Counted from the first letter of the stretch, positions 13,052 through 58,349 are shown. The stretch is DNA of 64,000 nucleotides from Blepharisma stoltei ATCC 30299 (GCA_965603825.1 CBFDEM010000063.1:310001-374000); one strand, 5' to 3'. Notes: generated by a model from the sequence alone, not told the origin. Program-made: numbers and translations.

Positions 13052-14312
13052 TATTATTAATTTTGCAGAGCTATAATTTATTATATAAAAACTTATCTCA
13101 AATTTGAGCATGAGTTTAAAAATTCTAAAAGAAATCAGCTATTTAATAATCTGAAGTATAAAATTAATTCTTTGCTCAAGTCAAAACTTAATATGTGATA
13201 GAAATTCAATTTTTATTATTGTAAAGTAATAGTCAATAAAAGATGATTATTAGGTATTTCAAGCTATACCAAATTTTGAAAATTTTGAAGCATAAAATCC
13301 TTTATTTTATGAATGCATTTAATATAAGCTTCAAAATCTATTAAGTTATAATTTTTAGAACTTAATATAGTAAATTCATTAAACTATATCATTGAAAATT
13401 TCAGATTATTACGAAAATACTTAGCTTTATATAATCTTTTATTTCTTACGATAAAAGAATAAAAAATTATGTGGTGGATAGCAGTTATAAACTAGCGCGC
13501 TAGACGTCTCAGCATTAATTAAGTTTCGTAGGCCTTGCTATATAGATCATAAATAAAATATCATATAGGTTTAAGAAATTATCTTTTCTTATTTTCTCTT
13601 CGCTCATGGGATTTTATTTATATTGCATTACTGCCAGTATATATAATTTTGTCAAGTCTATAACATAATTCAGTGGTTTACAGAGGAATAAACTCCTAAT
13701 AAATTGTAAAAAAGTACAGCTGAAGTTTCATTTGATTCAGCGCTACCTTCTTGCCTTAACGGCTTGGCTTGATTTGGAAGACTATGGTTTTATGTGCATT
13801 GCTTGAGGCTGAGAGGCTATGCACATAGTCTATCGCTTTTTTTTATAAGATAAATGCAACCTTAAGAATGTATATATCTTTTAAAAGTAGTTATATTTTA
13901 TTAAACAACTTTACAATTTTATTCAGCATTTACATAATTATTATTCTTTTTTCTGTTGTACTTATTCGATTTGTATCATCAAAAAAATTGTCCAAATTGT
14001 TTAAATCATGCTTTTTCGGACTTTTTGACATTTTAATTTGGTTTGATTGTGAATTTTCATTTAAACTTCTTTTGGTAGCAATATACAATTCTTTTATTGA
14101 ATTTATAAATGGCCCAGTAGCTTGCACTACCACAAGACATGTAGTAAAACACATAATTAAATTGTCCATAATATCAATCCCAGCTTGCCCCAAATCAAAA
14201 AAATATGGAGTTAGGAGAAGAAAAATGATTGAAATTCCAAATTCAGTAATTATATTTGTAATTTGAATAACTCTATCTTCAAAAGGGCTATAGAACGCTA
14301 AAAAAATGCAAT

Positions 14313-14326
14313 CTATATAAAAATAC
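14313..14326 (-). other. Degenerate 14-nt intron in copy A (GTATTTTTATATAG)
   Basis: Same position as the 15-nt intron 2 of the four other full copies, but one base shorter. Confidence 0.65.
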
Positions 14327-14584
14327 GCATATTGCTGATACTGCATTAATTGTGAGTTGAGTTTGAGGAAAGTCATTTAAAAATATTTGAATAGAAATAA
14401 AAACTAATCGTCTTGCAAAAAAGAGAGAATAATATTGTGTACTCATAAATCCTGAATTATTTTTGAATTCATAATAAAGCGAGCTTCAAGGAGTTAATCA
14501 TTTCCTATTTCTTTTGTTTAATATTTTATTCAAGTTTTTGAAGCTAAAATATGCATGAGCAAAAGGAGTGAGGGCTATTAAGAT

Positions 14585-14599
14585 CTAAATTATTATTAC
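14585..14599 (-). other. 15-nt intron in copy A (GTAATAATAATTTAG)
   Basis: GT..AG, phase 0, terminal TAG in frame. Position conserved in five paralogs. Confidence 0.85.
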
Positions 14600-17500: not shown

Positions 17501-18922
17501 TCCTAGAGTTAAAGATGGCGAATTGTCTTTTGATTTCATGAATGAAGTTCCTCTAAAATAATAACCTCTTAGGTTTGCAGCAAATGGATCTTCTAGATTA
17601 TAGAATGGGTAAAAACTATCATCATTTCCAGTTTGGAAAGCAACATTTCTTACTGAATCATAAACTATGTCTTTTATCTGGCTGAGTCTTAAGTTGAAAA
17701 CCAGTTCATTTGATAAATTGCATTGATTGCCACTTAAAATATATCCAGAAGGGCAAAACTTAAGACATACATTTGATAGCATAAGTAAGGAAGATCCACA
17801 TTGAATGCATTCAGTGAAAGATGGTCCAGAGCATGTAGAACAAATTGAGTGACAGAGATTGCATGTCTCTGTGTTTCCATTCCAATAAGCATTTTGATTG
17901 CATTGGCATGAATCTCCTACAAATCCCGCATTAGCTATACAGCTTAGGCACTTTTGTGTAAAAGATTTGCATGAATAGCATTCTTTTTCTCTGCAAAGTG
18001 TGCATGCTAGATTGCTTCTACACCCATTAGAGCATGATGTTTTGCATGGATCACATGTAGTGCTATCAGGATAATTTGCCAATGAGCAAGAGCTTGGACA
18101 GAAATCTCCAGCCGGGCAACTTGTGCAAGGGTTTGAAGTGCAAGTCGTAGTTGCTCAGTCGGAATTGGCATGAGTTTCATCATTATATATTTTTAAACTC
18201 CACAGGAATCCTTTGAAGCCAGTCCCTGACGCATTATCAAAGCCAATTAGCAGAGCTCCAGAAATACTATCTCTTAAGTATGTTTGAGATATTGAAGTCT
18301 TTGTAATAGCAAGCGATGAGTCTATATAACTATAAGAACTATAAGTCCCATCTGTATTAATTGATCCAGAAAATGACAGATAATGTCAATCAGCAAATAA
18401 ATTTTGTGAAATAGCTGCATTTAAAGATGATCCATCTTTGAGTAATAAATTGAGATTCGGGTAGCCACTGCTGTCGATTTTTACAACTAAATATTGAGAA
18501 GCTCCATTGTATTTTTAATTAAAACTCCCTGGCCTATAGCCTTAACCCAAAGCATGATAGAGAAATAAAGATTAAAAATTAAAGAGCTAGTCATATAACT
18601 TTGCCCAGTAAAAAATAGCCCTTCTGGTCATTTACATCAAGCACTGGATAAGTGTTTGTATTAATACTACCAACATTAAATCCTAATAAATTATCAAGCA
18701 CAATATAATCATCCAATTCTAAATCCACAATTAAACTATTCACTAAATCGCATTTATTTGTTATAGCATTTGAATTGAAACCGCTTGGACATTGTGTATC
18801 GCAGAGGACATTTAATAAGTAATATGAAGAAAAGCAGGCTGTGCATTGATAATAATGTGTTGATGAGCATAAAAAGCATCCAGCAAAACATGGAAAGCAA
18901 GAAAACCCATCAGCAGAAAGCA

Positions 18923-19060
18923 TATAATATTTTCTAATAAAATATTTAAATTAAATTTATAGTTTTAATATTTTTTAACAATAAGAAAATTATGTCTCGA
19001 TATTATGCAAACACTTATTGGCAAAAATATGATGATGATAAATTATTCAAACAGATTATA
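18923..19060. mobile_element. 130-bp AT-rich insertion flanked by a TATA direct repeat (IES- or MITE-like)
   Basis: TATA at 18923-18926 and 19057-19060. Removing 134 nt restores CNPGY-MLS(A)DGFSC as in copy B. Ends form an imperfect inverted repeat. Confidence 0.7.
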
Positions 19061-21811
19061 GCCTGGATTGCAAGTGCAAGGGCTCCCAGATGCATTAGGA
19101 ACGCATTGAGTGCAAAGGCCTGCTAAGAATCCTGTACATATACTGCAAAGCGGATCATTACAAACGTTGCAAGATCCACTTCTAACGCAATCGTTTGGGC
19201 AAGAATCGCAGTTTGTGATTGTAGCTCCGTTCATTCATTGAGTTAAAGAGCAAGTCCAAAGGCAATTAGCAACTGCCCCTGAGCCACATATTTGATCTGA
19301 GTATTGAGTATTAAAATTCGAGACAGCCAATTTCATAAAGTGAATTGATAAATGTACCCTATAAACTTGCTTGAAGAGTTTTGTCCCAAATATATTGAAT
19401 TACCTGCTGCATCTCTATATATATAATCAGTAGTTGTAATAGAAGTTTGTGGAGAGTTGTTTAAATAAGGGACGATTGTTGTTGATATGGTTGATGATGA
19501 AAATGAAACAACAAAAGCAATATAAGCTCAGCCTGTGCCTGATGAATTTAAAGCAGCAGTTGTTATTGGAGTAGTGGCTTCTAGTCTATTTTCTAATATA
19601 ATTGTTAGAGCACCGTTTGCAGATATTGCTATTTTATTATTTGGACTATTTCCCAATATATCTCCTGAGCCTGGCAATATTCAAATTCATATTTCGAGAG
19701 AGAAATTAAATGAAATGTAGACAGATGATGTTTGAAGATATGAGCCGCCATAAAAGTAAAGTCCTCGGTTTTTAGCAGGGAGTGGGTCTACAGCTTCAGG
19801 ACTAGTGAAAAAGTAGCAACTGCTTGAGCTTGTCCCTGTTGTAAACAAGCCATAAGCTCCGTAAAAATAATTTGCAAAATTTTGATCAATAACAGGTGTT
19901 GAAATAGGAGTACAAGAGCCAAATCCATACGGGCACTCTCTTAAGCAGATATTTGACACTAAAATATTTGGGGATACACATGTGGTGCATATAAAATTTA
20001 AAGATCCACTACAGTCGCTACATAAATTATCGCATTTCTCACAAGTTTTTGTGGAAGATACCCAATAAGCATTTGGACTACATTGGCAAACTCCTCCAAT
20101 GGGTTCCGCATTCGCAATACACGAAATACAAATTAAATTTGCTTCATCACAAGTAACACACAATTGCTGATAGCACATATTACAATAATCATTCGTAGCA
20201 CAGCTTCCCCTCATTAAAATTATTCCAGAAATTTTAGGAGCTTGGATAACAGGATGCAAGCTAACAATTAAATTCCCGCTAGAATAAGCATTGCTTATTA
20301 AGCAAAACCAAATGTTGAAGCATAAGCTGGCCCTCCACAATTCATTGCAAGGGCAACATTTGCAGCATCCAGGGAGTAACATATGACAATGCTCATGATG
20401 ATGATAGCTAGCAGTCTTACGTCATCAAACATTTTTTAATTTATTCTCCTTCTAAATTTTATGCGAAGTTACGATAATCATGATATCAAAAATAGAATTA
20501 AAGAATCTAATAATGTGAATTTTCAATTGATGAGACATTATTTCAATTCTTTTCAAAATAATTTAAATTTCTTTAAATTATTGGCAAAAATTTTTGCAAA
20601 ACAAAATTTGATTAAATTTGCTGTTGAATAAAATAATAAAAACTGGATCGGTACTATAGAACCTCGCATTCGCTAGATGGTTGCTCATCAAATTAAATAA
20701 GCTATAATATTTTTTTTGATTTCTTACTTACTCTTGAAGTTGAGACTGAGCTTATTTTCCTTTTGGCTTTTGAAGTAATTGTGAGGATTTTTTCATTTAA
20801 ATAGCTCAAAGTATACTTTTCTTTTAAGCTCTATTGATACTCTTTAATTTATCGAGAAAATGGATATTGACTTGATACGGAAATTGCCACACACTGCTAG
20901 AAATGGAATGTGAAAGCGTGCATGTGCTCTAGTTGGTTTTATCCCAATCGATATTTTATGGATTAGTTTAAGTAGGATTGCTTAATGATGCCTATGATGA
21001 TTTTCCAGAAAATGATGAAATTAAAAAAAACAATGATTATGATGTTTGGAGTGATGACGATAGAAGCTAATACTTTTTTGAAGAAAACATAAAGAAAGGA
21101 GATTTACTTAAATAAATAAGACTTCTGATAACAGCAAAAGATGAAAAGTACTTAATGATGGAGAATCGGCTTTTTCGGCAAAATTTACAAGGGAAATTTT
21201 AGACAAATTGTGATTAATTGCTCAAGTGATGGAACAACAGAATGAAGAAATGAGACGTTAGCTTTAATGAAGCTAATTAAACGACTGAAACAATTAAGAT
21301 ATGATTCTCGAATATATAGATATCTTAAATTTTATATTAGACTTAAACTCTACAGAAAATAAAATCAATTAGGCTCGATTTTTATCGGAAAATTGGAATT
21401 AAAAACAAATCCACAGAAAATTAAAATTAATATCAGGAGCAAATCTTATCAGAAATTTAGAATTCAGACTAGACTCAAGTTTATGTTATAGCTATACAAG
21501 GAAAAGAAAGACCTTTAAAAATAGGACCTCTTAGGGGGAAGTTGTCTTAATATTTCTCTAATTCTCTTTCTATTGCATCAATCTGTGCGCTTTAAATGCA
21601 GTATTGCTTTTAAAATTATTATTAACTCTTTAATTTCATAAGAATTCTAAAGATGAAGCAGAACTTTATCACTTACTTTTATTGTTTATTAATTATATAT
21701 AAGTTTGAATCCATATAAACTTTTGCTTAATTATCGCATTTATCATTAAAATTTTCAAAATTCATTTCTAGCAATATAGGTCTATTTATCACACTTTTCG
21801 AATTTTATTAT

Positions 21812-24800
21812 TTATTTTATGCTTTCACTGCTATTGTTTTCTGTTTCCTCCATATTTGTTCCAGCTGCACCATCAAAAAAATCGTTCAAGTTGTTTAAGT
21901 CTATTTTCTTGCTTTTTTGTTGTGCTTTGATTGGCTTGGGGTGTGAATTTTCAGCTAGAGTCTTTTTGATAGTGAAATATAATTCTTTAACCGAATTTAT
22001 AAATGGCCCAGTAGCTTGCGCTACCATAAGAGAAATAGTTAAATATATTATTAAGCTGTCCATTACTTCAATTCCTGCTGAACCCAAATCAAAAAAGTAT
22101 GGAGTTAGTAGCAGAAAAATGATTGAAATTCCAAATTCCGTAATTAAATTTGTAAATTGAATGACTTTATCTTCAAAAGGCTTATAAATCAAAACAAACA
22201 ATGCGATCTATATAAAAGTTACGCATAACGCTGAAACCGCATTAATTGTGAGTTGACTTTGCGGAAAATCATTTAAAAATATTTGGGTAATAACAAAAAT
22301 TAATCTCCTTGCAAAAAACAGAGAATAGTATTGAGTGCTGATAAAACCTGAATTATTTTTGAATTCATAATATAGTGAACTTCAAGGAGCTAATCATTTT
22401 CTATTTCTTTTGTTTAATATTTTGCTCAAGTTTTTAAAGCTAAAATACGCAAGGAGAAAAGGAATAATAGCTATAAGAGTCTAAATTATGGTTACAATAC
22501 AAATTCAACATAAAAAATAGTTTGTAGATTCAAGAGTACTTTCAAAGATTTTAAAATTATCGGTGCTCAAAATCCCGACTGTAGCAGCAAAGCCAAATTC
22601 AAGATAACTCACTATTATAAATCTCAAAAATGTGCTGAACTTATATTCATTAAATATTTTTTGAAATTTCTTTCCTATATATCTCTGAGAGCATTTAGAA
22701 AAGTAATATACTAGAGGAATGGCAACTATAATGCCGCATAGCGCTGTCGCATCATTTCCAATATTAGCAAGTATCAAGTAGCTATCATACCCATAGTTTC
22801 TTGCTCGATCATAAGGAGCATTACTTTCATTTTCATCAATAAAAAATAAAAACAAGTTTGGAACAATATTAAAATTATTCATAGATTTGAAAAATACTGA
22901 AATTTTTTCTGTAATAGGATAGCTTGCATATGGTATATAGGCAAGAAGTTGAATAGTGTTAATCATAGTCCATAAGCTAGAAGGATTTAGGCTAAATATT
23001 GATAAAATCACGCCTGATCCAACCAAAATTTTGATCCCTGCAGAAACTTGATTTTTAATCCCAGCAATTTCATCAGATTCGAATTCAGACTCATAAAGAG
23101 TACCAGATAAATATTTTTCAAGAAGCACACTACCTGAAATTGATTCAATATGTTCTGAATCATTAAAGTATAATGAAACTACTGCTTTTTGTAAAGATTT
23201 TCGACCAAAATCGCATGATATTAAAAATTCTTTATTTGAGATATAGGTTATTGATCATGATGGAATTGTATGATTTTGGATTTGTATCATTATTTGCTCG
23301 TTTGTTAAATTCTGTTTTAAGCCATCGCTAAAGCTTAATATGAGGGTGTTATTAGGATTAACCGTAAGTGTAGCATTAAAGGTGCTTAAGCATACCTTAT
23401 TTTCTAATCACCCTGTAGGACAAAGATCGCAGGTCTCTGTATTCTCATTTCATAAAGCATTCTGATTGCATTGGCATGAATCTCCTACAAATCCTGCATT
23501 TTTAATACAGCTTATGCATTTTTTGGAAAAAGATTTGCATGAATAGCACTCTTTTTCTCTGCACAGACGGCATGTCAGATCACTTCTGCATCCATTAAAG
23601 CATGATGCTTTACATGAGTTGCACAAAGAGCTACCTGGATAATTTGTCAATGAGCAAGAACTTGGACAAAAAACCCCACTTGGACAGTTTGGGCATACAT
23701 TAGTGGTACAAGTTGCAGAAGTCCATCCATTGTTTACATAAGTTTCATCGTTATAAATTTTTAGATTTCACAGAAAACCTTTGAAACCAATCCCAGATGA
23801 TTTATCAAAGCCAATCATGAGCACTCCAGAAATGCTATCTCTTAAATATGTTTTAGAAGCTGAAGTACTTGCCATGAGCAAGGCAGAATCTGCATATATA
23901 TTAGAGCTATATGCTCCATTTCCATTGATTTTCCCAGAAAATGACAAATAATGTCAATCAGACAGTAAATTTTGTGTAGCAATTGCATTGAGCGATGACC
24001 CATCTCTGAGCAATAAGTGAAGATTCTGATTGCCGTTTTCATCAATCTTAATTACTAAATATTGTGTAGCTCCATCGTATTTTTCAATTAAAATTCCTTG
24101 TTCAATGACCTTAACCCAGAGCATAATAGAAAAATAAGGGCTAAAAACTAAAGAACTGCTCATATAGCTTTGCCCAGTGAAATAATATCCACGGTTAATT
24201 GCAGGAATGGGATCATTTACGTCAAATGCTGGATATATATTTGTATTATTGTTTCCAACATTGAATCCATATAAAGTGTCAAGTACAATATAATCATCAA
24301 GTTCTAAATCAATGACTAAACTGTCCACTAAATCGCATTTATTTGTGGCAATGTTTTGACTATAGCCACTTGGGCATTGAGAGTCACATAGGATATTTAG
24401 CAAAAAGTATGAAGAATAGCAAGCAGCACATTGGTAATAATCAGTAGATGAGCATAAAGAGCATCCCGTAAAGCAGGCTAAGCAAGAAAAGCCATCTGAA
24501 GAAACAATATAACCACTGTTACAAACACAAGGAGTTCCAGATGCATTCGAAACACACATAGTGCATTTATTTGCATCAAAGCCAGTACAGACACTGCAAA
24601 GCGGATCATCACAAATATTGCAAGACCTACTTCTAGTGCATCCAAGATTGCAACTTGAATCACAATTTGTGCATGCTGCCGAATATCAGTATTTATTAAT
24701 ATCACATGTCCATAGGCATGCTGCTAATAGCCCAGACCCACAAATTTCATTTAATTGTGCAGAAAAGTCAAAAACTGCAACATTTCATAAATGGTATTTA

Positions 24801-27800
24801 TAAATGAATCCTGTAAAATATGAAGATAAACTGCCACCGATTTTTATTTTTTGGTTGGTTTGGTCTCTATATATAAGCTTATTAAAAGTTGCAGAGGCCT
24901 TTGAAACATTGTTTAAATAAATTATCAAAGTCGTTGACACAGAAGAATTGCTGAATGAACATGTAAATGATAAATATTTTCACATTGTGAAAGGAGTGTT
25001 TGACAGAGTTTCTGATGAAGTTGTTTCTGATGGACTTTCTAATGTAATTAATATAGAACCAGAGGAATCCAAAATAATTTGCGAATTTGATAAAACATGT
25101 CCTGAGGCAATTACATTAATTCAAAAACCCATTGAGAAACTATAGGAAAGATAAATGCTTACATTTGATATTAAATATTGGTTTCCGCTGAAATATAAAC
25201 CTCTTTGCTTCGCTGGAATAGGATCTGAAGACTCAGGCGAATTAAAAAATTGAAAAGAAGTTGCGCTTGTCCCAGTTGTAAAAATTCCATAAGTCCCTTG
25301 AAAGTTTCCAATAAATGATGCATCAATCACAGGTGTAAAAACTGCTGTGCACGGGCTTGAATATCCATAAGGACAATCTCTTAAGCAAGCATTATAAAGT
25401 AGATGATAAGATGGGCCGCACGATAAACACAAAAAATATTTATTTGTTTGGCACTGACTGCATAAATTATCACAGATTGCACATCCATCCAAGCTTTGGT
25501 CCCAAAATGTGTTACTATTGCAAATGCATGTGGTGCCTGAAATGCTTGCATTTGCTATACAGGATGTGCAAGGACCATCAAAAGTTGTGCATGCGAGACA
25601 TTCTTTGTCTTTGCACAGTCTGCAAGTGAGTGCTGATCTGCAGCCATATGGACATGAGCCTACACAAGAAACGCATGAGCTTGAATAAAACTGTCCAAAA
25701 GGACAATTATCAGGACATTTAAGCTCAGAAGGGCAAGCAGCACATCCAGGACATCCTGATGTTATTCATTCTTGCAATGCGTAGGTATTATCATTATAAA
25801 TTTTGAAACTTCATAGGAAACCAGTAAATCCTCCCGATAGCGTACTATCTTTTCCGATATAAAGCGAGCCATTGTCTTTCATATATGCAAATGAGCTAGA
25901 CAAGCTTGCGGATATATAAACTCCATCTATTGACAAATATAATGCAGTTTTGCCTGATGGTAGATCGCCAGTAAATGCTATATAATGCCACCCTGAATAA
26001 AGAATTGAAGAGGTGCTTGCATATATCGTAGTTAAATCTGAAAGTAGAATATTCATTTTGTGATTCCCAGATGAAAAATTGAAATAGGAAAATATTGTTG
26101 TTCCATCAAATTTCATAAATAAATATCCGTCAGCAAGTGGCTTTACCCAAACTAGTAATGAAAAATAAGGACTCATGATAAATGATGTAAGACTCATATA
26201 GTTGGCACCTGAAAAATAGTATCCTCTATAAATTGAAGGAATTGGGTCAGTTGTTTCCCAAGAAGGATATTTATTAGAATTTGATAATCCTACGGAAACT
26301 CCATTGACTGTGTCTAGCTGAATTAGATTTTGTAAAGAAATGTCCAAGGGATTTGACGTAGTTAAAATACAGGAATTGGTTGAAGTATCAGCTGTATAGC
26401 CTGAAGGGCAATAAGTGAGACATAATGCTTTTAGCAAATAATAGCCAGAAGAACAAGAGCTGCATTGATAATAAAGAAGTCCAGTACATGAAGCACATCC
26501 AGTAAAGCAAGGAACGCATGAAAACCCATCAGATGACACATATCAGCCAATGTTACATTTGCATGGACTCCCAGAAGCATTCAAAACACAATTAGTGCAT
26601 TTATTTGGATCAAATCCAGTGCAAATGCTACAAAGAGGATCATCACAAATATTACAAGAACCACTTCTTGTGCATCCAAGAGTGCAAGTTGATTCGCAAT
26701 TCTGGCATGTTGTTGAAAACTTATATTTATTAAGAGGGCATGCCCATAGACAAGTTGCTAATAACCCAGAGCCACAAATTTCATTGAGTTGCGTTGTAAA
26801 ATCAACAATTGCGACATTCCATAGCTGATATTTGTACATAAATCCTGTGAAATATGATGTCGAGCTGCCACCAAGTGTAATCTTTTGATTGGCAAGATCC
26901 CTATATATTAAAGCGTTAAACGTAGATGATGTTCCAGAGACATTATTTAGATAAATTGTCACTGTTGTTATTGCGGCTGTGGAGCTAGTAAATGAGCATG
27001 TAAATGATAAATACTTCCAAGTTGTAAATGACGAACCTAAAATTGTTTGCATTGATGTTATCTCTGATGGACTTTCTAGTGGTATTTTTATAGAGCCAGA
27101 GGAATCCACAGCAATTCTTGAATTTGTTAAAATATCCCCTGAACTAATTACGTAAGTCCAGAAGCCCATTGAAAAACTATGGGAAAGATAGATATTGACA
27201 TTTGATATCAAATATTGGCTCCCATTAAAATATAAGCCTCGTTTTTTGGCTGGAATGGGATCTACTGCTTCAGGTGTATTAAAGAACTGGAAAGAAGTGG
27301 CACTTATTCCAGTAGTGAAGATTCCGTAAACTCCTTGGAAATCTGTATTAAATGATTCATTTATAACAGGTGTAAAAATTGCTATGCATGGGCTTGCATA
27401 GCCATATGGGCAGCCTTTTAAGCAGACATTCCAAATAATAGAATATGTTGCAACACAAGATGTGCACATAAAATATTTATTTGTTTGACAGACGTTACAC
27501 AAATTATCACAGATTTGGCATCCATCTGAGCTCTGTTCCCAAAATGTATTAGCATTGCAAACACAGGTCGTTCCTGAGATATGAGCATTTGGTATACAAG
27601 AGGTGCAAGAGCCATCAAAAGTAGTGCAGGTAACACATTCTTTGTCTTTGCATAATCTACAGGTTGATGCTGATCTGCAGCCATAAGGACATGTGCCAGT
27701 ACAAGATACACACGAGCTAGAATAAAACTGCCCAAAAGGGCAATTATCAGGGCATATTAGCTCAGAAGGGCAAATAGAACACCCAGGGCATCCAGACGAT

Positions 27801-43000: not shown

Positions 43001-46000
43001 GTTTGAAAAGCAACGTTACCTACTGAGTCATAAACTGTGTCTTTTATCTGGTTAAATCTTAAATTAAATGCTAGGCCGTGAGATAGATTGCAATTATTGG
43101 CTCCTGAAACATATCCAGAAGGACAAAATTCCAAGCAAATGTTTGATAGCATAAACAAAGAAGTCCCACATTGAATGCATTCAGTGAAAGAAGGCCCTGT
43201 GCATGATGAACAAATGGAGTGGCAGAGATCGCAGGTTTCTGTGCTTCCATTCCAATAAGCATTTAGGTTGCATTGGCATGAATCTCCTACAAATCCCGCA
43301 TTTGTAATGCAGCTTAAGCACTTATTTGAAAAAGATGTGCAGGAATAGCATTCTTTTTCACTGCAAAGTGTGCATGCTAGATTGCTTCTACACCCATTAG
43401 AGCATGATGTTTTGCATGGATCACATGTAGTGCTATCAGGATAATTTGCTAGCGAGCAAGAGCTTGGACAGAAATCTCCAGCCGGGCAACTTGTGCAAGG
43501 GTTTGCAGTGCAAGTCGTAGTTGTTCAGTCGGAATTGGCATGAGTTTCATCATTATATATTTTTAAACTCCACAGGAATCCTTTGAAGCCAGTCTGTGAC
43601 GCATTATCAGAGCCAATTTGAAAAATTCCAGAAATATTATCTCTTAAGTATGTTTGAGATACTGAAGTCTTTGTCATAGCAAGTGATGAGTCTATATAAC
43701 TATAAGAACTATAAGTCCCATCTGCATTAATTGATCCAGAAAATGACAAGTAATGCCAATCAAAAAATAAATTTTGTGGAGTAGCCGCATTAAGAGATGA
43801 TCCATCTTTAAGTAATAAATTGAGATTTGAATCGCCGCTGCTGTCAATTTTAACAACTAAATATTGAGAAGCTCCATAGTATTTTTCAATTAAAAGTCCC
43901 TGATCAATAACCTTAACCCAAAGCATGATGGAGAAATAAGGACTAAAAATTAAAGAGCTAGTCATATGACTTTGTCCAGTGAAATAGTATCCACGGCTAA
44001 TTGAAGGAATGGGATCGTTTGAATCAATCACAGGATAAACATTTGTATTGAGATTTCCAACATTAAACCCTGATAAAGTGTCAAGCACTATATAATCATC
44101 CAATTCTAAATCTACAACTAAACTATTCACTAAGTCACATTTATTCGTGCCTGGATTTTGACTATAGCCACTTTGGCATTGTGTATCACATATGACATTT
44201 AAAAAATAATATGTAGAGTCGCAAGCCGAGCATTGGTAATAATGTGATGATGAACAAATAGAGCATCCAGTAAAGCAAGGCAAGCAAGAAAACCCATCTG
44301 GAGACAAGTAATAGTCTAAATCGCAACTACAAGGTGAGCCATGGGCATGTGAAACACAAGTAGTGCACTTATTTGTATCAAATCCAGCACACACACTACA
44401 AAGGGGGTCATCACAAACATTACAAGATCCACTTCTCGTGCATCCCAAAGTACAAGTAGAATCACAACTCTGGCATGCTGCTGAATATCAGTATTTACTT
44501 ATATCGCATCCCCATAGACAAGTAGCTAATAAGCCAGATCCACAAATTTCATCAAGCTGTGTTGAAAAATCAGAAATAGCAACATTTCAGAGTTGATATT
44601 TGTAGATAAACCCTGTAAAATACGATGATGAGCTGCCACCTATTTTGATTTTTTGATTAACGGTATCTCTATAAATTAGAGTATTGTAAGTAGATGATGC
44701 AACAGAAACATTATTATTATAAACAGTTAAAGTAGTTATTACTGTCGGGTTGTCAAATGAGCATGTAAATGATAAGTATTTTCACATTACAAAAGGTGTG
44801 CTTGACAGAGTTTTTGATAAAGCTGCCTCTGATGGACTTTCTAATATAATTTTTATAGAGCCAGATGACTCTAGAGTAATTCTTGAATTGGATAAAATAT
44901 CTCCTGAAGAAATTACATAAATCCAGAAACCTATCGAGAAGCTATGTGACAGATAAATATTAGTATTTGATATTAAATATTGACTTCCATTGAAATATAA
45001 ACCTCTTTGTTTTGCAGGGATAGGGTCTACTGTTTCAGGCAAGTTAAAAAATTGATAGGAGCTTGGATTTGTTCCAGTGGTAAAGATTGTATATGTACCT
45101 TGAAAATCGCTATTGAATTCTATATCTATCACAGGAGAAGTTATTGTCACACATGGACTCGTAAATCCATATGGGCAGGCTCTTAAACAAATATTTGAAA
45201 CAAGATAATAAGATCCACAAGATGTACACAAAAAATAATTATTTGTTTGGCATTGGCTGCATAAATTGTCACATATCATGCACCCATCCAAGCTTTGCTC
45301 CCAAAAAGCATTATTATTGCAAACACATGTGGTTCCTGAAATGCTTGCATTTGTTATACAGGATGTGCAAGGTCCATCAAAAGTTGTGCATGCCAGACAT
45401 TCTTTATCTTTGCATAGTCTGCAGGTGAGTGTTGATCTGCAACCATAAGGACATGAACCTACACAAGAAATACAGGAACTTGAATAATACTGCCCGAATG
45501 GACAACTATCAGGGCATTTAAGCTCAGAAGGGCAAGCAGTGCAGCCAGGGCAGCCTGAAGTTATTCACTCCTGAGATGCGTATGTATTGTCATTATAAAT
45601 TTTGAAGCTCCATATAAATCCAGTAAAACCTCCAGATGCTGTACTGTCTTTTCCAATGTAAAGTGTTCCGAGATCTTTATAATATGCTGAGGAGGCAGAA
45701 GTAGCTGATGTTGGAGTTCCTCCATCTATTGATCGGATAAGAACAGTATGTCCTGAAGTAAGTCCACCAGTAAATGCTATATAATGCCAACTTGAAGACA
45801 GGCTAGAAGAACTACTTATGCTAACTGAAGTCGAATCTGAAAGCCTAAGATTAATTCCAGATATTCCTGAGGCAAAATTTATATAAGAGTATATTGTGGT
45901 GCCATCAAATTTCATAAATAAATATCCATCACTAAGAGGCTTTACCCAGACTAGTAATGAGAAATATGGACTTATAGTGAATGATGCAAGACTCATATAA

Positions 46001-49000
46001 TTATTCCCTGAAAAATAGTATCCTCTATAAATTGAAGGGATTGGATCAGCTGTTTCTCATGTTGGGTATTCATTTGAGTTTGAAGATCCTACAGACAATC
46101 CGCTAACTGTATCTAATTGAATTAAATTTTGAAGTTAGACGCTTAAAGGATTGGATGCAGATAGAGTGCAAGAATGTCCTGAAGAATCTGCAGTATAGCC
46201 TGAAGGGCAATAAGTAAGACACATTGTTTTCAATAAATAATAGCTAGAGAAGCAAGAGCTGCAATGGTAATAAAGAGTCCCAGTGCAAGAAGCACATCCA
46301 GTAAAGCATGGTACACAAGAAAACCCATCAGTAGAAGCCACATAACCAGCATTGCAAGTGCAAGGAGTTCCAGACGCATTGGAAACACATTGTGTGCAAA
46401 GACCTGTTAAAAATCCTGTGCATACACTACAAAGAGGATCAAAGCAAACATCGCAAGAGACATTTCTGACACAACCATTTGTGCATGAATTGCAGTTTGT
46501 AGGTGTGGCTCCATCCATTCATTGAGATAAAGGACAAGTCCAAAGGCAGCTAGCTGTTGCTCCTGTGCCACATATTTGATCTGAATATTGTGTATTGAAA
46601 TTTGAGACAGCAACATTTCATAGAGTGAACTGATAAATATACCCTAAGAAATTGCTTGAAGAACTCTTGCCAAGGATTATTGCATTATTTGTTGCATCTC
46701 TGTATATATATTGATTAGTCGTAATAGAAGTTTTCGGCGAATTGTTCAAATACGGGACAATAGTTGTTGATAAAGTAGATGAAGAAAATGAGGTCGCAAA
46801 AGAAATGTAGACCCAGGCTGAGTTCGATGGATTTAAAGCTGCAGTTGTTACCGTTGTAGTGGCTTCTAGTCTATTCTCTAATATAATCGTTAGAACACCA
46901 TTTGCAGATATCGTTATTTTATACCCTGAGCTATTTGCTAAAATATCGCCTGAGCCTGATAGTATCCAAACCCAAAAACCAATTGAAAAATTAAGTGAAA
47001 TATAAACAGCTGATGATTGAAGGTACATGCCACTAGAAAAATAAAGTCCTCTACCTTTAGCTGGAATGGGATCTACTGTTTCTGGGGTATTAAAAAATTG
47101 ATAGCTGCTTGAGCTTGTTCCTGTTTTAAAAGGGCCATAAGTTCCTAAAAAATAATTAGCAAAGCTTTGATCAATGACAGCTGTAGAAACTGAAGTGCAA
47201 GGCGAGCCGAATCCATAAGGGCATGCTCTTAAACATACACTTGAAACTAGAACATTTGGAGATACGCAGGTTGTGCATAAAAAGTTCATTGAGCCAGAGC
47301 AAACGTTGCATAAATTGTCACATTTCTCACAGGTTCTCGTTGCATAAACTCAATAGGCATTTGAGCTGCATTGGCATGCCCCACTGACAGCTTGGGCATT
47401 GGCAATGCAAGTTGCGCATGTCAATGTTGGGTTATTGCACACAGCGCATCTATCTGTGTAGCATTGATTGCAATTGTCTGCTATAGCGCAATTTCCTCTT
47501 ATTAAAAGTATTCCAGCAATTTTTGCTAATTCTAAACTTGGAGTAAATCTGACATTAAGAATGCCGCCAGAAAATGCTCCAGAAATCAAATTTCCGCCAA
47601 TATAAACACTTCCACTTGTAAGTGTAAATTCTGTAAACAGGTCAAAAGCAGCATTATAGCTTGAAGCTGCCACTATGTCTAAATTTGAATAAACAACATA
47701 ACTTCCAATTTTTACTGTAAATTTTCTTTTTCCTGTTTGTGTGAAATAAATTTCAGAAAATTGAAGAATAAGCACATACGCCCCATCAGGACTGACTGGG
47801 ATATCATATCCTCAAGTTCCAGTTGCAACCCTTTCTGATTGATAAATATAGTCATTTACTGTGCGTGAAATAGCGAGAGATCCATCAAAATAAGCATTAG
47901 AGCCTGAAGTGTAATAGCTATCAGGAGAATATGCAAAGCCAAATGTCGAGGTATAAGCTCCACCACCTGCATTCATTGCTAAGACAACGGTAGAAGAGTC
48001 AAGAGAGTAGCATACGATTATTTCTATGAAAATAACCAGAAGCTGCTTAAAATCACCTAACATTTTTATATTATTTTAACTCTCTTAAAATTTGGATAAA
48101 CAATTGTAAGGATCAATTATAAAAATGGTGATGAAATAGATATGCAATGTGCAGCTAATTGAGAAATCTTTAATTTTGATTGACAAGCAATGAGAATTTT
48201 TCTTAAAAAATAAATTAAGGTATATAGTTTATATTGAGGGAGTGCAAAAGTGAAGATAAGATGGGTGAAATTTAGAAGATTGGAGCAAGAAAATATCTAG
48301 TATATTTTCTAAAGAAATTGGATTTTTTCTAGGCCTTGAGGCATGCCGCATGATTTAATCATATTCTTGAGGCAATTTATTTACAGTTCCCAAAAGCAAA
48401 AGTTTGATCAAAATTATCATAGCATAATGCTTCATAATTTGGTAATAATGAGCGAAGTAATTTATATCAATATTTCAACATTTCTTTATCTTTTTTACAC
48501 TAAAATTTATTTCTCTGTCTTTTTACTTGCTTCGAATAATTTATCTCCCTCAAATCACTATGAGAATTAAGTTCTTCTCATTTTATAATTCAAGTCTTCA
48601 ATAGAATTTTTAGTTTGAGAACCAAATTAGAGCTATAATGCGGCTTTAAGCTTATACTCTCTTCAAATTGAGGTCTATTAGTATAAATACGAGGCTGAAC
48701 CAATAAATGATTGGCTACACCATTAAAATTATTAAAATCTATAAGGTTTAGTAAGCTAAGGCGATATTATTGATACTTTTAATGTAAAGAAAATTAGCAA
48801 TTAAGCTTAATAATTATCTTTATCTTATGAATAGATTTTTATATGTTAGTCAGCAATGATCTAGTTTGGAGTAGATATCTGTGTAAAATGTTGGTTTTCT
48901 CCAACATTTGCTGTAGTTTCGTTGCCAAAAAAGTCTCCTAAATTGTTTAAATCTATCCTCTTCGTTTTTGTTGCTAATTTTATTGGATTTGAGCGTAAAT

Positions 49001-49259
49001 CTTTTCCAAAATTTCTTTTAACTGCATAATAAAGCTCTTTTAAGGAGTTTATGAATGGCCCTGCAGATTGGACCATCATAAGAGATACAACAAATATCAT
49101 AATTACACTGTCCATAGCATCAAGACCGCTTGAGCCAAGATCAAAAAAATATGGGCTGAGCAACATAAAAGTGATAGAAATTCCGCATTCTGTAATTAAG
49201 TTCGTAAGCTGAATAATCGTATCTTCAAAAGGCTTATACACAAATACAAACAGGGCAAT

Positions 49260-49274
49260 CTAATTAAAAATTAC
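49260..49274 (-). other. 15-nt intron in copy F (GTAATTTTTAATTAG)
   Basis: GT..AG, phase 0, in-frame TAG, conserved position. Confidence 0.85.
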
Positions 49275-49532
49275 ACATAAGGATGCTACTGTATTAATTG
49301 TAAGCTGACTCTGAGGATAATCAATTAAAAAAACTTGAACCGCGATAAAAATTAGCTGTCTGATAAAAAACAAAGTATAATATTGTGTACTCATAAACCC
49401 TAAATCGTTTTTAAACTCATAATACAAAGAATTTCAAGGAATTAGCCATTTTCTGTTTCTTTTGTTTATAATTTTGCTTATGTTTTTAAAACTAAAATAT
49501 GAATGAAGCAATGGAGTTATGATCATCACAAC

Positions 49533-49547
49533 CTAAATTAAACTTAC
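49533..49547 (-). other. 15-nt intron in copy F (GTAAGTTTAATTTAG)
   Basis: GT..AG, phase 0, in-frame TAG, conserved position. Confidence 0.85.
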
Positions 49548-52500
49548 AATGAAAAACCAGCAAAGAAGATAATTCGTGAGTTTGGTTGGGCTATCAAATA
49601 TTTCAGAGTTTTCTACGCTCAAAATGCCAATTATAGCTGCAAACCCTACCTCTAGATAATTTAAGATCCAAAATCGTAAAAATGTGCCAAATTTATAATC
49701 ATCGTATATTTTTTTTAGCTTCTTTCCTATTACTCTCTGAGAGCATTTAGATATATAATAAACTAGAGGAATCAGAGATATAAGACCAAATAAAATTGTC
49801 ACATCATTTCCAACATTTACAAGTATCAAGTCACTATCATATCCATACTTTTTTGCCTGATAATAAGGAGTATTCCCTTGATTTTCAGCAATAAATAATA
49901 AAAATAAATTTGGAACAAAATTGAAATCATTCATTGACTTAAAAAACGCAGAAATTTTATCTGTCAAAGGGTAATTAGCATACGGTATGTAAGAAAGAAG
50001 CTGAATAGTGTTTAGCATAGTCCATAAGCCAGAAGGATTAGGGTTAAACATTACAAGAGCAACACTAGAGCCAACCAAAATTTTTGCTCCTGAAGAAACT
50101 TGATTTTGAATTTTCGCAATTTCTTGCTGCTCAGAAGTCATTGCGGATTGATAAAGAGAGCCTGCTAAATAATTATCGCGAATTACTCCACCAGATATTG
50201 AAATAACAGCAGTGTGATCTAAAAAATATACAGAAACTAATGTGCCCTTTGATATTCCTCCACCAAAATTGCATGATATTAAATATTCGTTATTTGAAAT
50301 GTAATCAACAGATCATGATGGTATTGTCTGATTATATGTGCAAGTTGTTGTTCCAATATATCCAGGAGAACAAGTACAGCTCCCTGATTGCAATGTGGCG
50401 TTATTTATACATCATGTGCACTTAGTTTCGTTATCACATTGAGCACAAAGAGGAGGACAGTCATAGCAAGAGTCATTTGCTTTGTATTGCCATTGATGAC
50501 ACATCGCGCATATTCCTGAGCTCGAATTCCAAGCGAGACCATAATCGCATTGACAATTTGTTGTATTTGATGTTCCAGATATGCATTCAAGGCAGGAGTC
50601 TGCAGTGTAATCAGAGCAAGATGCACATTTAGGGTTGTCACAAAGGTTGCAAAATTTACTAGAATCTTTGCAGCTTGAGCATTCACTACTACATTTGGAG
50701 CATTTATTATATTCTGGACCAACCAAGTACTGATTAATCTGGCAATTAGGAATGCAAACACCAGTTGTAAGACATGCTTTACAATTTTCTGTACATTGTG
50801 CTGCAGGTAATGAGAGGGATGATATAATTTTTACTGAGTTATATCCCTTAATGTCGTAAATAAATCCTTTAAAATAATTAGAATAGCCCAAAGAACCTAT
50901 TTCTGCTCCAAGTGTAAAAGTGAAGTCTGTTTTCGTATCCTTAAAATAATCAGATCCGAAATCAACTTGATGATCTTCAGCTCCATTTAAATAGAATGCC
51001 ATTTTCGTATTTTTCAAACTCGTATATTCTGCAGAAAAAGCAATATGATTTCATAAGTAAGATTCAAGACTTTGCAAATAAAAGAAATAGTTTAGTCCTG
51101 GAGCTTTGAAGTTTAATGAAATCATTACAACCCCTGAAGCCAATTGGAGAGAGAAGATTGGCTTATAGAGGCTATCTTGCTTTGAGATAATCGTTCCAAA
51201 GCCACTCTCTATGTTAATTCATATTGAAAATGTAAATGAATATCCAAAGCTGAGAACTGGACTACTGTAATTAGGGTAAATAGGTAAATGCATAATTGAG
51301 CTTATTCCATTGAAATAGAATCCTCGATATGAGGCAGCTAATGGATCAAATGGATCATAATCTGGATAAAATGCAGTACTATTACCAGTTAATGCTGGTA
51401 TTTTGCTTTTTTGATCAAAAACTACTCCTTCTAGAGTATTAAAAGATAGATAGAATATAAAAGGATCCTTTTCCATACATAAGGATCCTTTTTCTATATA
51501 TCCATCTGGACACTTCGAGATGCATCAGCCTAAATACATGTAGAATCCAGAAGCGCAAATAATACAGTCTCCAGGAGCTGATGACGTGCAAGTTTTGCAA
51601 GTATAATCACATAAGGTGCATTCTTCATTTGCTGAATTTCAGTAATATCCATCATAGCATACGCAAGTTGATGAAGATAAATAGGCATGCTCTCTGCAAG
51701 TTATGCATGTCGACGCATAGTCATCACATATTAAGCAAATTACATCTTGGCATAAATTGCAGTTTTTATCAGGTCTCACACAGCCCCAAGTGCACTGAGC
51801 TTGGCATGAGGCACAACTGGAGCCAGCTGGATAATGTGATAAATCGCAGTTCGGAATGCATTCATTTGATAATTCTATAGGGCAAAATGAGCATCCTGAG
51901 CAAGTTCCTGAAGTCACCATACTACTAAGTGGTTCATCAATATTATAAATATTAATATTTCATAAAAACCCAGTATAAAAGTTTGTGTTTGAATTCGCAT
52001 CAGCTCCAATGGCAATAGAAAATGATGAAGAAATATCTTGATATCATGAAGCTGCGAGATCTAGGGATATTTCAGAGTAAGAATCAACATAAAATGAAAT
52101 TTTTTGCTGAGGCGTTGAGCTTATTATGCTCTTAACTGCAATAAAATTTCAAGATCCTAAAGTAACTGATAAACTGGTGCTTGCATATGAAACTGTTGTC
52201 CCATCTTGCAATTTAATCAAGAAATTAAGCTTTCCTGAAATCAGTGAAAATACAATAAAATTTGAAAGTGAGCTGTCATATTTAGAAAATATGTAACCAG
52301 TGTTTGAAGTTGGATTTATTCATGCTGCAATAGTGAATTCTGCTCCAAAAGTTAAGGAGGGGGGACTATCAATTGATTTCATGAAGGAGGTTCCTCTAAA
52401 ATAGTATCCTCTCAGTTCTGCAGCGTATGGGTCTTCGGCTGTATAAAATGGGTAAAAGTTATTATCATTACCAGTTTGAAAAGCAACGTTTCCTATTGAG

Positions 52501-55500
52501 TCATAAACTGTATCTTTTATCTGGCTGAGTCTTAAGCCGAATACTAAATCATTTGATAAGTTGCATTGATTACCAGCTACAGAGTATCCTGAAGGACAAA
52601 ATTCCAAGCAAATATTTGATAGCATAAACAATGAAGTCCCACATTGAATGCATTCAGTGAAAGATGGTCCAGAGCATATAGAGCAAATTGTGTGGCAAAG
52701 ATCACATGTCTCTGTGCTTCCATTCCAATAAGCATTTAGGTTGCATTGGCATGAATCTCCTACAAATCCCGCATTTGTTATACAGCTTAAGCACTTTTGT
52801 GTAAAAGATGTGCATTTATAGCATTCTTTTTCTCTGCAAAGTGTGCATGCTAGATTGCTTCTACACCCATTAGAGCATGATGTTTTGCATGGATCACATG
52901 CAGTGCTATCTGGATAATTCGTCAATGAGCAAGAGCTTGGACAGAAATCTCCAATCGGGCAACTTGTGCAAGGATTTGCAGTGCAAGTCGTAGTTGTTCA
53001 GTCGGAATTAGCATGAGTTTCATCATTATATATTTTTAAACTCCATAGGAATCCTTTGAAGCCAGTCTGTGGCGCATTATCAAAGCCAATAAGTAGCGTT
53101 CCAGTAATGCTGTCTCTTAGATAAGTTTTGGATATTGAAGTAACTGTTTTGAGAAGAAATGAGTCTATATAACTATAAGAACTATAAGTCCCATCTGCAT
53201 TAATTGATCCAGAAAATGACAAGTAATGCCAATCAAAAAATAAATTTTGTAGCGTAGCTGCGTTAAGAGATGATCCATCTTTAAGTAATAAATTGAAATT
53301 TGGATAGCCGCTGCTGTCAGTTTTAACAACTAAATATTGAGAAGCTCCATAGTATTTTTCAATTAAAACTCCCTGGTCAATAACCTTAACCCAAAGCATA
53401 ATAGAGAAATAAGGACTAAAAATTAAAGAGCTAGTCATGTGACTTTGTCCAGTGAAATAGTATCCACGGCTAATTGAAGGAATGGGATCGTTTGAATCAA
53501 TCACAGGATAAACATTTGTATTGAGGTTTCCAACATTAAACCCTGATAAAGTGTCAAGCACTATATAATCATCCAATTCTAAATCTACAACTAAACTATT
53601 CACTAAGTCACATTTATTCGTGCCTGTGTTTTGACTATAACCGGTTGGGCATTGTGTATCACATATAACATTTAAAAAATAATATGTTGAGTCGCAAGCC
53701 GAGCATTGGTTATAATGTGATGATGTGCAAATAGAGCATCCAGTAAAGCAAGGCAAGCAAGAAAACCCATCTGGAGATGAGTAATAATCTAAATCACAAC
53801 TGCAAGGCGAGCCATGGGCATGAGAAACACAAGTAGTGCACTTATTTGCATCAAATCCAGCACACACGCTGCAAAGGGGGTCATCACAAATATTACAAGA
53901 TCCACTTCTCGTGCATCCCAAAGTACAAGTAGAATCGCAACTATGGCATGCTGCTGAATATCAGTATTTACTTATATCGCATCCCCATAGGCAAGTAGCT
54001 AATAAGCCAGACCCACAAATTTCATTGAGCTGTGCTGAAAAATCAGAAATAGCAACATTCCAAAGTTGATATTTGTAGATAAACCCTGTGAAATACGATG
54101 ATGAGCTGCCACCTATTTTGATTTTTTGATTAACCTGATCTCTATAAATTAGAGTATTGTAAGTAGATGATGCAACAGAAACATTGTTATTATAAACAGT
54201 TAAAGTAGTTATTACTGTCGGATTGTCAAATGAACATGCAAATGATAAGTATTTTCACATAGTAAAAGGAGTGCTTGATAGTGTTTGTGATGAAGCTGTC
54301 TCTGATGGGCTTTCTAGTGTAATTTTTATAGAGCCAGATGACTCTACAGTAATTATTGAATTGGATAAAATATCTCCTGAAGAAATGACGTAAGTCCAGA
54401 AACCCATCGAGAAACTATGAGAAAGATAAATGTTATCACTTGATATTAAATATTGACTTCCTTTGAAATATAGACCTCTTTGTTTCGCGGGGATAGGATC
54501 CACTGCTTCAGGTGAGTTGAAGAACTGATAGAAGCTTGTGCTTGTCCCGGTAATAAAACCAGTATAAGTTCCTTGAAAGTCCCCATTGAATGTCGCATCG
54601 ATCACAGGCGAGGTGACTATTACACATGGACTTGTAAATCCATATGGGCAGGCTCTTAAACAAATATTTGAAACGAGATAATAAGATCCACAAGTTGTGC
54701 ATAAAAAATATTGGTTTGTTTGACATTGAGTGCATAAATTATCGCAGATTTGGCATCCGTCTGAGCTTTGTTCCCAAAAAGCATTATTATTGCAAACGCA
54801 CGTAGTCCCTGAAATACTGGCATTTGTTATGCAGGATGTGCAAGAACCATCAAAAGCTGTGCATGCTAGGCATTCTTTGTCTTTGCACAGTCTGCAGGTG
54901 AGTGTTGATCTGCAACCATAAGGACATGAACCTTCACAAGAAACACAAGAACTTGAATAAAACTGTCCAAATGGACAACTATCAGGACATTTAAGCTCAG
55001 AAGGGCACGCTGTGCATCCAGGACAGCCTGATGTTATTCATTCCTGAGATGTGTAGGTATTGTCATTATAAATTTTGAAACTTCATAAAAATCCAGTAAA
55101 ACCTCCAGATGCTGTACTGTCTTTTCCAATGTAAAGTGTTCCAAGATCTTTATAATATGCTGAGGAGGCAGAAGTAGTTGATGTTGGCGTTCCTCCATCT
55201 ATTGATCGGGTAAGAACAGTCTGTCCTGAAGTAAGTCCACCAGTAAATGCTATATAATGCCAACTTGAAGACAGACTTGGAGAGCTACTTATGCTAACTG
55301 AAGTCGAATCTGAAAGCCTAAGATTAATTCCAGATATTCCTGAGGCAAAATTTATATAAGAGTATTTTGTAGTACCATCGAATTTCATAAATAAATATCC
55401 ATCACTAAGAGGCTTTACTCAGATTAGTAATGAGAAATATGGACTTATAGTGAATGATGCAAGACTCATATAATTATTTCCTGAAAAATAGTATCCTCGA

Positions 55501-57192
55501 TAAATTGAAGGAATCGGATCTGTTACCTCCCAAGAAGGATATTTATTTGAATTTGAAGATCCTACAGACAATCCACTAACTGTATCTAATTGAATTAAAT
55601 TCTGAAGTGAAATACTTAAAGGATTTGACGCTGATAATGTGCAAGCATGGCCTGACGAATCAGCTGTATAACCAGTAGGACAATAAGTAAGACACATTGT
55701 TTTCAATAAATAATAGCTCGATGAAAAGCTGCTGTATTGATAATAAAGACCTCCAGTGCATGATGCACATCCTGTAAAGCATTGCACACAAGAAAACCCA
55801 TCAGTAGAAGCCACATATCCAGCATTGCAAGTGCAAGGAGTTCCAGACGCATTAGAAACACATTGTGTGCAAAGACCTGTTAAAAATCCTGTACATTTGC
55901 TGCAAAGAGGGTCAAAGCAAACATTGCACGATCCGCTTCTAACACACCCATTTGTGCATGAATTACAGTTTGTAGGAGTTGCTCCGTCCATCCATTGAGA
56001 CAAAGGGCAAGTCCAAAGGCAGTTTGCATATGATAGAGTGCCACAAATTTGATCTGAGTATTGAGTATTAAAGTTGGAGACTGCTGCATTTCATAGAGTG
56101 AATTGATAAATGTAGCCTAAAAAATTGGTTGACGAGCTTTTACCGAGAATTATTTTATTGTTTATTTCGTCTCTATATATGTATTGATTAGTGGTAATAG
56201 AAGTTTGTGGGGAATTGTTTAAATATGGGGTAATAGTGGTTGATATAGTTGATGAAGAAAATGAACTAGTAAAAGAAATATAGGCCCAAGCTAAGTTTGA
56301 TGGATTTAAAGCTGGAGTTGTTACTGTTGTAGTTGCTTCTAGTCTACTCTCTAATATAATAGTCAGAACACCATTCGCAGATATTGTTATTTTATTCTTT
56401 GTCAGAATATCTCCTGAGCCTGATAGTATTAAAACCCAAAAGCCAATTGAAAAATTAAGCGAAATGTAGACAGCAGATGCTTGAAGGTATGATCCACCAG
56501 AAAAATAAAGTCCTCTACTTTTAGCTGGAATTGGATCTACTGTTTCTGGGGTAATAAAAAATTGATAGCTACTTGAACTTGTTCCTGTTTGAAATAGGCC
56601 ATAAATTCCTAAAAAATAATTAGCAAAATTTTGATCAATGACAGCTGTAGATACTGAAGTGCAAGGCGAGCCGAATCCATAAGGGCATGCTCTTAAACAT
56701 ACACTTGAAACTAGAACATTTGGAGATACGCAGGTTGTGCATAAAAAGTTTATTGAGCCAGTACAAACATTGCATAAATTGTCACATTTATCACAGGTTC
56801 TCGTTGTATAAACCCAATAAGCATTTGTCCCACATGTGCATACACCACTAACTTTCTGCGCATTTGCAATACAAGTATTGCATGTCAATGTTGGGTTATT
56901 CCACACAGCGCATCTATCTGTGTAGCACTGGTTGCAATTGTCTGCTATAGCACAATTTCCCTTTATTAAAAGTAATCCAGCAATCTTAGCATTATCTATG
57001 ATTGGAATAAACCTGACATTAAGAACTCCGCCAGAAAATGCTCCAGAAATTAAATTTCCTCCAATATAAACATTTCCGCTTAAAAGTGTAAATTCAATAA
57101 ACACATCATAAGCTGCATTTTTGCCTGCGACAACAACTAAGTCCAAATTCGAATAAGCTGTATAGCTTCCAATGGCTATTGAGAATACTCTT

Positions 57193-57407
57193 TTTCCAGG
57201 CTTATGATTTTTGCTCCTGGGCATATTAATCGATCGGATTTATTAGCAATATTGATGTAGATTTTTCTAGAAATCATTTAATTGGAAAGCGTTATTTTAG
57301 CCAAGCAAAAGTTCTGAGAAAAAAGTTTTGACTAAATATTAACGAGATATTGACGAGATTATGTCTCCAAGTAAAAACTTTGACCAAAAGACCTTACATG
57401 TTTCCAG
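57193..57407. mobile_element. 201-bp insertion flanked by a 7-bp direct repeat TTTCCAG (putative target-site duplication)
   Basis: TTTCCAG at 57193-57199 and 57401-57407. Removing 208 nt gives AEIF-W-TVTGKRVF, matching copy E SEIYFTQTGKRKF. Confidence 0.75.
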
Positions 57408-58349
57408 TCACTGTTCAAAAAATTTCAGCAAATTCGAGAATCAGTACATAAGTCCCATCTGGACTCACTGGGATGTCATATCCTCAAGTTCCAGTCGAAA
57501 CCCTTTCTGATTGATAAATATAGCCATTTAGTGTTTGAGTAATTGTTTGAGATCCATCAAAATAGGAACTGCCTTGGGTATTATAAGTATCAGGGGAATA
57601 TGTAAAGCCATATGCTGAGACATAAGTAATGCCTCCTGTATTCATAGCTAAGACAACAGTAGTGGGATCAAGAGATAAGGATAGGATTATATTTATGAAA
57701 ATAATCAGAAGTTGCCAAAAACCAACTAGCATTTTTATATTATTAATATCTCTCTTAGAATTTGGATAAAAATTGCAGTGATCATGATGAAAAATGGTGA
57801 CACAATAGATTTACAGTTCTTCGCTGGTTTAGTGATTTATTTTAGTTATATCATGAAAAATATTTTTATAAATTATAAGAAAAAATATTATTATTACTTC
57901 CTAGTTAATAGGCTCACCAATAGAAATAACTTTTCTATAAGGCTATCTCTTAAAATGAAAATGTATATAATAAGATAACTCATAAATTTTAAAAGAAGAT
58001 TTATTAAACCATAAGCACAATAAATAAATCCAATTTTGATATCTAACCGCATCAATAAAACCGATAGCTGTGTATATTATAGAGAATAAAGATTTCTTCA
58101 TATGGAGTTCTCAGACTCAGAATTTGAGACCAAGGCGGCATAAAATTTCATGCACCTAGTATGATTTTTTATGAATTCTGACCTATCTCTCGAGCAAGAA
58201 AGCCCATTGAATTAATATAACTAGCCTATCCTATATTAATATTAATGTCCTAATCCTCACTTACGATACTAAACCTTGCTTATTCTACTGAAGTTATTAA
58301 CCTATTTCACTTAAAAAGCCAAACCAAATATTATCCAATAATTACTTAT

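Follow-up and report, generated by a model that had tools for sequence, protein, structure and literature searches.

Giant candidate lectin-type receptors encoded by a tandem gene array of the ciliate Blepharisma stoltei

The somatic genome of the heterotrich ciliate Blepharisma stoltei (ATCC 30299) contains, within the 64,000-nucleotide stretch analyzed here (CBFDEM010000063.1:310001-374000 of assembly GCA_965603825.1, hereafter the window), a tandem array of five giant genes, A to E, arranged head to tail on the minus strand between positions 13930 and 57732. The encoded proteins share one order of parts: a signal peptide comes first, followed in B, D, and E by malectin, then by five or six modules of LamG_3 and Cys-rich sequence and an immunoglobulin-like (Ig-like) stalk, and the chain ends with a membrane domain of nine helices and a basic tail. 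They are probably (a probability of about 0.6) giant multi-pass receptors of the family OG0000019, in which a lectin-type outer part is set on a divergent PF06011 domain at the cell surface or in the food vacuole. This reading draws on observed gene structures, domains, family size, a fold relation, and purifying selection.

The family has been listed before. A single sentence in the supplementary information (SI) of the B. stoltei genome paper describes OG0000019 as having a C-terminal multi-pass domain, central Laminin_G_3 domains, and, in some members, an N-terminal malectin domain, and places it among clustered transmembrane families with "decayed remnants" (PMC9942806, SI). The present array fits this description in its multi-pass C-terminus, its LamG_3 center, and the presence of malectin in some copies. 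The earlier account gives seven helices by TMHMM and names neither a membrane-domain family nor a function (PMC9942806), whereas nine helices are predicted here and the membrane domain is found to be related to PF06011. No paper with both Blepharisma and malectin in its main text was found. An initial reading made from the sequence alone (the sequence-only reading) knew of no functional description of this architecture, and none was found; the architecture itself, however, was already on record as OG0000019 (PMC9942806, SI).

Gene structure of the array

When only TAA and TAG are taken as stops, the region opens into giant reading frames of 2,622, 2,164, 2,024+646, and 2,568 codons and two shorter ones, all on the minus strand; the standard code applied to the same region yields fragments only. 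Of 137 in-frame TGA positions in pairwise alignments of the copies, 108 are matched by TGA or TGG in the paralogue, and UGA is therefore read as Trp. The genome paper reports a genome of 41 Mbp, UGA as a Trp codon, and introns mostly of 15 and 16 bp (PMC9942806). Each gene carries two 15-nt introns (GTA..TAG), which enclose every in-frame TAG of the membrane domain and occupy the same two sites in B, C, D, and E. Candidates of this form and length number 42 in the region, as against 13-16 for lengths of 14, 16, or 17 nt. The sequence-only reading had recognized five head-to-tail genes hidden by TGA=Trp, to which the minus strand can now be added, and had placed the ends of the array exactly, position 57732 being the first base of the ATG of E and 13930 the last base of the stop of A. 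Genome-wide searches covered an assembly of 41.46 Mb in 64 contigs. Database searches used single exons and TGA-free pieces, with the stored proteins P0155 and P0002, which are the first exons of B and C, as stand-ins for these exons; joined translations, spliced or read through, served for display, hydropathy, and codon comparisons only.

Copies B and C are the only uninterrupted ones. Gene B (21812-30310, minus strand, as are all features of the array) is open over 2,800 codons with intact introns and encodes a signal peptide, a full malectin domain, six modules in the order M1-M2-M3-M2'-M3'-M4, the stalk, and the nine-helix domain. Gene C (31093-38265), likewise intact and open over 2,380 codons, encodes a signal peptide followed directly by modules 2-6, the stalk, and the nine-helix domain, with neither malectin nor module 1. 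Gene E (48861-57732, called copy F in the sequence-only reading) combines a signal peptide, a split malectin domain, six LamG_3/Cys-rich modules, stalk, nine-helix domain, and tail, as judged from its open reading frame, introns, and Pfam matches. Gene D (39376-48063) resembles E in architecture and has a full malectin domain at 47509-47988, but is interrupted by one in-frame TAA (46135-46137) where B and E have Ser at the same place (SNPLSV* versus SNPLSIS). The malectin domain of E is broken, and its frame shifted, by an insertion at 57195-57402 made up of 201 bp and one copy of the 7-bp repeat CTGGAAA. The insert begins with GTAAGG, ends with AG, and has CTGGAAA repeats at its flanks. It may be a piece of germline sequence that was retained, or else a long intron of a rare kind. 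A multi-copy miniature inverted-repeat transposable element is ruled out for the somatic genome, in which a search found a single occurrence. Copy A (13930 to about 20430, its 5' end being approximate) is decayed: the malectin core is gone, modules 2-3 are deleted, and frameshifts have accumulated, with module 1 (19243-20451) in a different frame. The stretch 18515-19243 of this copy contains three frame changes and an AT-rich insert at the junction of two halves, and its second intron, of 14 nt, is followed by a frame break inside the membrane domain.

Lectin-type modules of the outer part

The malectin domain of B (29744-30232) was located by Pfam, by a scan of the own genome, and by alignment to Xenopus malectin (2k46). 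It scores 108-112 bits against PF11721, for which the cut-off is 23; the domain of D scores 98.8 bits, C has none, and that of E is split by the insert into profile positions 1-90 and 89-163. The B domain aligns end to end with 2k46 (E 3e-21) and also matches that of the plant receptor kinase ANXUR1 (E 1e-4). The malectin fold is certain, while a glycan ligand is only putative. The glycan contacts of Xenopus malectin are Y67, E87, Y89, Y116, F117, and D186 (PMC13335976). Counted on the 2k46 alignment, Y67, E87, and Y116 are conserved in B, where F117 is replaced by Tyr.

Behind the malectin domain lies a series of repeated modules. Laminin_G_3 (PF13385) matches B with 96 bits over three stretches and C with 121 bits over five, and the malectin and LamG calls of the sequence-only reading are thus both upheld by Pfam. 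Its furin-like CxxC repeats correspond to Cys-rich spacers, for which cEGF lies barely above its cut-off and Furin-like_2 below its own. Counted by the motif DPxP..RGxYF, genes B, D, and E have six modules each and C has five, which narrows the four to six per gene first proposed; the motif recurs with a period of about 340 residues, in place of the 270-300 given before. A module tree and an identity matrix separate six positional types, modules at the same position in different copies being 66-93% identical and those at different positions 22-57%. On this comparison the ancestral order is malectin followed by M1 to M6, as in D and E. Copy C has lost malectin and M1, and in B the M2-M3 pair has been duplicated (69% identity between the pair copies) and M5-M6 lost.

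The membrane domain and its relation to PF06011

The stalk end, the nine-helix PF06011-like domain, and the Lys-rich tail occupy 21812-23254 in B (introns 22481-22495 and 22208-22222), 31093-32559 in C (introns 31783-31797 and 31510-31524), 39376-40839 in D (introns 40060-40074 and 39787-39801), and 48861-50312 in E (introns 49533-49547 and 49260-49274). The structure of this region was approached through two AlphaFold2 models of a close paralogue, P0001, each built with about 44 homologues and with predicted local distance difference test scores of 85.9 and 89.3, together with hydropathy. Cys-rich hairpins and an Ig-like sandwich are seen in them, along with a single helix, a short helical sub-domain, and more long helices. 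The positive-inside rule would place a Lys/Arg-rich loop (KILNKRNRKW) and the Lys-rich tail in the cytosol, and on that basis the best fit is an N-terminus outside, a C-terminus inside, and nine spans between them; of the eight or nine helices first counted, nine is thus the predicted number. Four residues (Arg, Arg, Pro, and Glu) are invariant across 45 membrane-domain homologues, and Arg and Glu are buried.

Among Pfam families, PF06011 (gathering score 28.5 bits) matches 19 of the 45 membrane domains of clear homologues (E<=0.05; best E 3e-8), while no other family matches more than one. The protein P0021 matches at E 3e-4, and one B. stoltei locus on another contig (C43), weakly related to the family of the window, exceeds the PF06011 cut-off. 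The best named fold match of the predicted model is a fungal "ML-like domain-containing" cluster of the ESM Atlas, 98% of which is PF06011, with a template modeling (TM) score of 0.72 over 337 residues and a root-mean-square deviation of 3.5, in a comparison of one predicted model with another. Other fold neighbors in the Atlas join the same fold to Ephrin_rec_like, Chlam_PMP, or TIR_2 parts. When PDB chains were searched with a sequence profile, only chance rows came up, and Foldseek of the membrane domain against the PDB gave no match below E 0.3. Neither Ion_trans nor PKD_channel was matched by the window pieces or the 45 homologues, and the ML-like TRP_N domain (PF14558) was not matched in any Pfam scan, the stalk being a generic Ig-like sandwich. 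Because homologues match PF06011 and the fold agrees, with no solved structure or canonical TRP or polycystin chain matching, the membrane domain is thus predicted to be a divergent branch of the Flc/Pkd2 type and not a six-helix TRP channel. The Flc/Pkd2 likeness had already been seen in the helix pattern; it is borne out by the homologues and the fold, but not by the window's own pieces. Two other candidates were set aside. Hrd1, the best hit of an exhaustive VIA search (Z 7.3), falls below the stated noise level for helical bundles, and Trypanosoma cruzi DGF-1, found by an Atlas feature search at 0.80, lies under the 0.9 bar.

The resemblance to fungal PF06011 proteins (Flc1-3 of S. cerevisiae, Pkd2 of S. 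pombe, TrpR of A. nidulans, and Flc1 of C. neoformans) would thus lie in the shared fold, in the predicted orientation, and in a beta-sandwich placed directly before the first helix. Where the fungal proteins have a single small ML-like TRP_N domain, at least 2,000 residues of malectin, LamG_3, and Cys-rich sequence and a generic Ig-like stalk are present here, and, unlike the fungal members, the window sequences stay under the Pfam threshold of PF06011. Reconstituted S. pombe Pkd2 allows Ca2+ passage on membrane stretch, with its N-terminus outside and its C-terminus inside (PMC9727806).

Family, selection, and proposed function

Copies were counted genome-wide, as the sequence-only reading had suggested, and the first membrane-domain exon finds at least 73 matches in the own genome, in arrays on three contigs (C6, C61, and C63). 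A profile of seven copies retrieves 1,180 cluster representatives at E<=0.001, the named relatives coming from B. stoltei and Stentor coeruleus and the others from metagenomes, and their outer parts carry LamG_3, TIG, PA14, or VSP-like repeats. The Stentor proteins (SteCoe_15853, SteCoe_17901, and paralogues) have LamG_3, Cys-rich repeats, and the same membrane domain (E 4e-35) but are shorter, at 0.8-1.5 thousand residues, with no malectin among the matches listed. In one word-based search of proteins of about 2,000-6,400 residues, the combination of malectin, LamG_3, and the membrane domain was found in B. stoltei only, whose genome has about 16 such genes; malectin and membrane domain are spaced 1.6-9 kb apart, and module number therefore varies widely. 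Larger arrays of the same membrane-domain family lie at C6:60000-140000, with about 13 copies, most of which have malectin, and at C61:12000-292000, with about 35 copies of 35-40% identity. In its last exon, gene E resembles a copy on contig C6 (69%) more than it does C (63%) or B (56%), and the array in the window is therefore not a recent local burst.

The array genes are under purifying selection. The ratio of nonsynonymous to synonymous substitution rates (dN/dS) is 0.16 for E versus D and 0.19 for E versus C, in outer and membrane parts alike, and diversifying selection is rejected, the ratio being 0.06-0.39 in every 150-codon window. Along the genes dS itself varies between 0.08 and 1.16, a sign that copies may have exchanged sequence. 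The family had been taken to evolve rapidly; this is not supported for the sequence, given these ratios and the 66-93% identity of modules at equal positions. Variation arises by gain and loss of modules, including in-frame changes of module pairs, and by birth and death of genes. The same values bear on the possibility that the array no longer has a function and is a remnant in decay, as the interruptions in A, D, and E and the "decayed remnants" reported for such clusters (PMC9942806, SI) could suggest. This is improbable: B and C remain open over their full lengths with introns intact, and even D and E show dN/dS of 0.16-0.19, which makes the defects of these two copies recent.

The array proteins are most likely lectin-type receptors with a transducing membrane domain, acting perhaps by ion flux. 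The large N-terminal part would face the outside or a lumen and may bind glycans or other surface ligands; the membrane domain would be more than an anchor and, as in reconstituted Pkd2, may pass Ca2+ or respond to force applied through the membrane or a ligand, and the proteins would act as receptors on the cell surface or in the food vacuole. An alternative is that they are adhesive or coat proteins, whose outer part would contribute to the surface coat or attach the cell to prey, substrate, or mating partner and whose membrane domain would only anchor it. The great length of the outer part, its modularity, and its Cys-rich spacers would suit such a role, as would the TIG, PA14, and VSP-like parts of the relatives, which are typical of adhesins; yet a single helix suffices as an anchor, while more than 1,000 representatives have retained a bundle of nine helices in which buried Arg and Glu are invariant, under purifying selection with dN/dS of about 0.15. 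Together with the very large size of the family and its interchangeable outer parts, these features argue against a plain anchor, and a purely adhesive role is unlikely. Alternatively, the proteins could reside in internal membranes (endoplasmic reticulum (ER), Golgi, food vacuole, or extrusome), with a lumenal lectin part and a membrane domain engaged in transport, a role that has been proposed for the Flc proteins of yeast. The malectin of animals is a lectin of the ER (PMC13335976), Flc1 is tied to flavin transport and Ca2+ homeostasis (PMC9600462), and Pkd2 is observed both in the ER and at the plasma membrane (PMC11333956). Tandem expansion and variable module number are, however, more usual for environment-facing proteins, and no retention signal turned up, although no search was aimed at one; a purely internal role is rather unlikely.

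The full-length malectin fold is shared with the animal protein, which has an ER anchor where these have a multi-pass domain. Plant malectin-like receptor kinases (ANXUR, FERONIA) likewise carry malectin outermost in a membrane receptor, but their output is a kinase. With Polycystin-1 and PKD1-like proteins there is a likeness of concept only, in that a giant adhesive outer part built of modules is coupled to a multi-pass domain related to channels; this is an analogy, as the membrane domains have no sequence or fold relation and the array proteins contain neither REJ nor GPS. Outside the window, a B. stoltei relative of the outer part (P0160, 2,243 residues) combines GPS (PF01825) and REJ (PF02010) with LamG_3, a polycystin-1-like combination.

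Several observations weigh against a glycan-binding receptor with a putative pore. Two of the six glycan contacts are replaced in B (Y89V and D186Q), the position equivalent to D186 being Glu in D and Asp in E by eye, and three copies out of five (A, D, and E) are interrupted. Neither P0001 nor the membrane-domain pieces of the window match PF06011, and the window pieces match no Pfam family at all, with only chance rows at E<=10. No solved structure matches the membrane domain, and no canonical TRP or PKD2 chain appears among the Foldseek or VIA rows.

The genes around the array are unrelated to it and were rejected as family members. Upstream, at 2907-6707 on the plus strand, lies a gene for a 1,266-residue protein with WD40 propellers and an Ion_trans domain (PF00520, 35.7 bits), in tandem with a second at 6829-10500 (plus strand) that has WD40 only in the one piece with matches. 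The flanks at 10559-12406 and 58257-61467, both on the minus strand, hold ordinary genes for a NIF-type phosphatase, an RRM protein, and an amidohydrolase.

A further possibility, distinctly unlikely at present, is that the family forms a new class of lectin-gated or force-gated receptor channels, in which a glycan-bearing particle, a prey cell, or a mate, bound multivalently by the malectin/LamG array, would exert a pull on the Ig-like stalk and open a Flc/Pkd2-type Ca2+ path; a bolder version would make a family member the receptor for the glycoprotein gamone 1. To our knowledge, S. pombe Pkd2 is the only relative tested in vitro. The gain is limited in that the genome paper had listed the family before and the family's function is here only predicted. 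Nevertheless, the findings suggest that the PF06011 domain is no fungal speciality and that protists use it as a general base on which large outer parts are set. Heterotrich ciliates recognize prey, their own kind (as cannibal giants), and mates, and we know of no surface receptor for any of these. The family would offer a concrete, testable candidate for such recognition, because it couples lectin-type domains to a membrane domain whose relative Pkd2 passes Ca2+ on stretch, and lectin- or force-gated channels, if real, would give heterotrich ciliates a modular recognition system.

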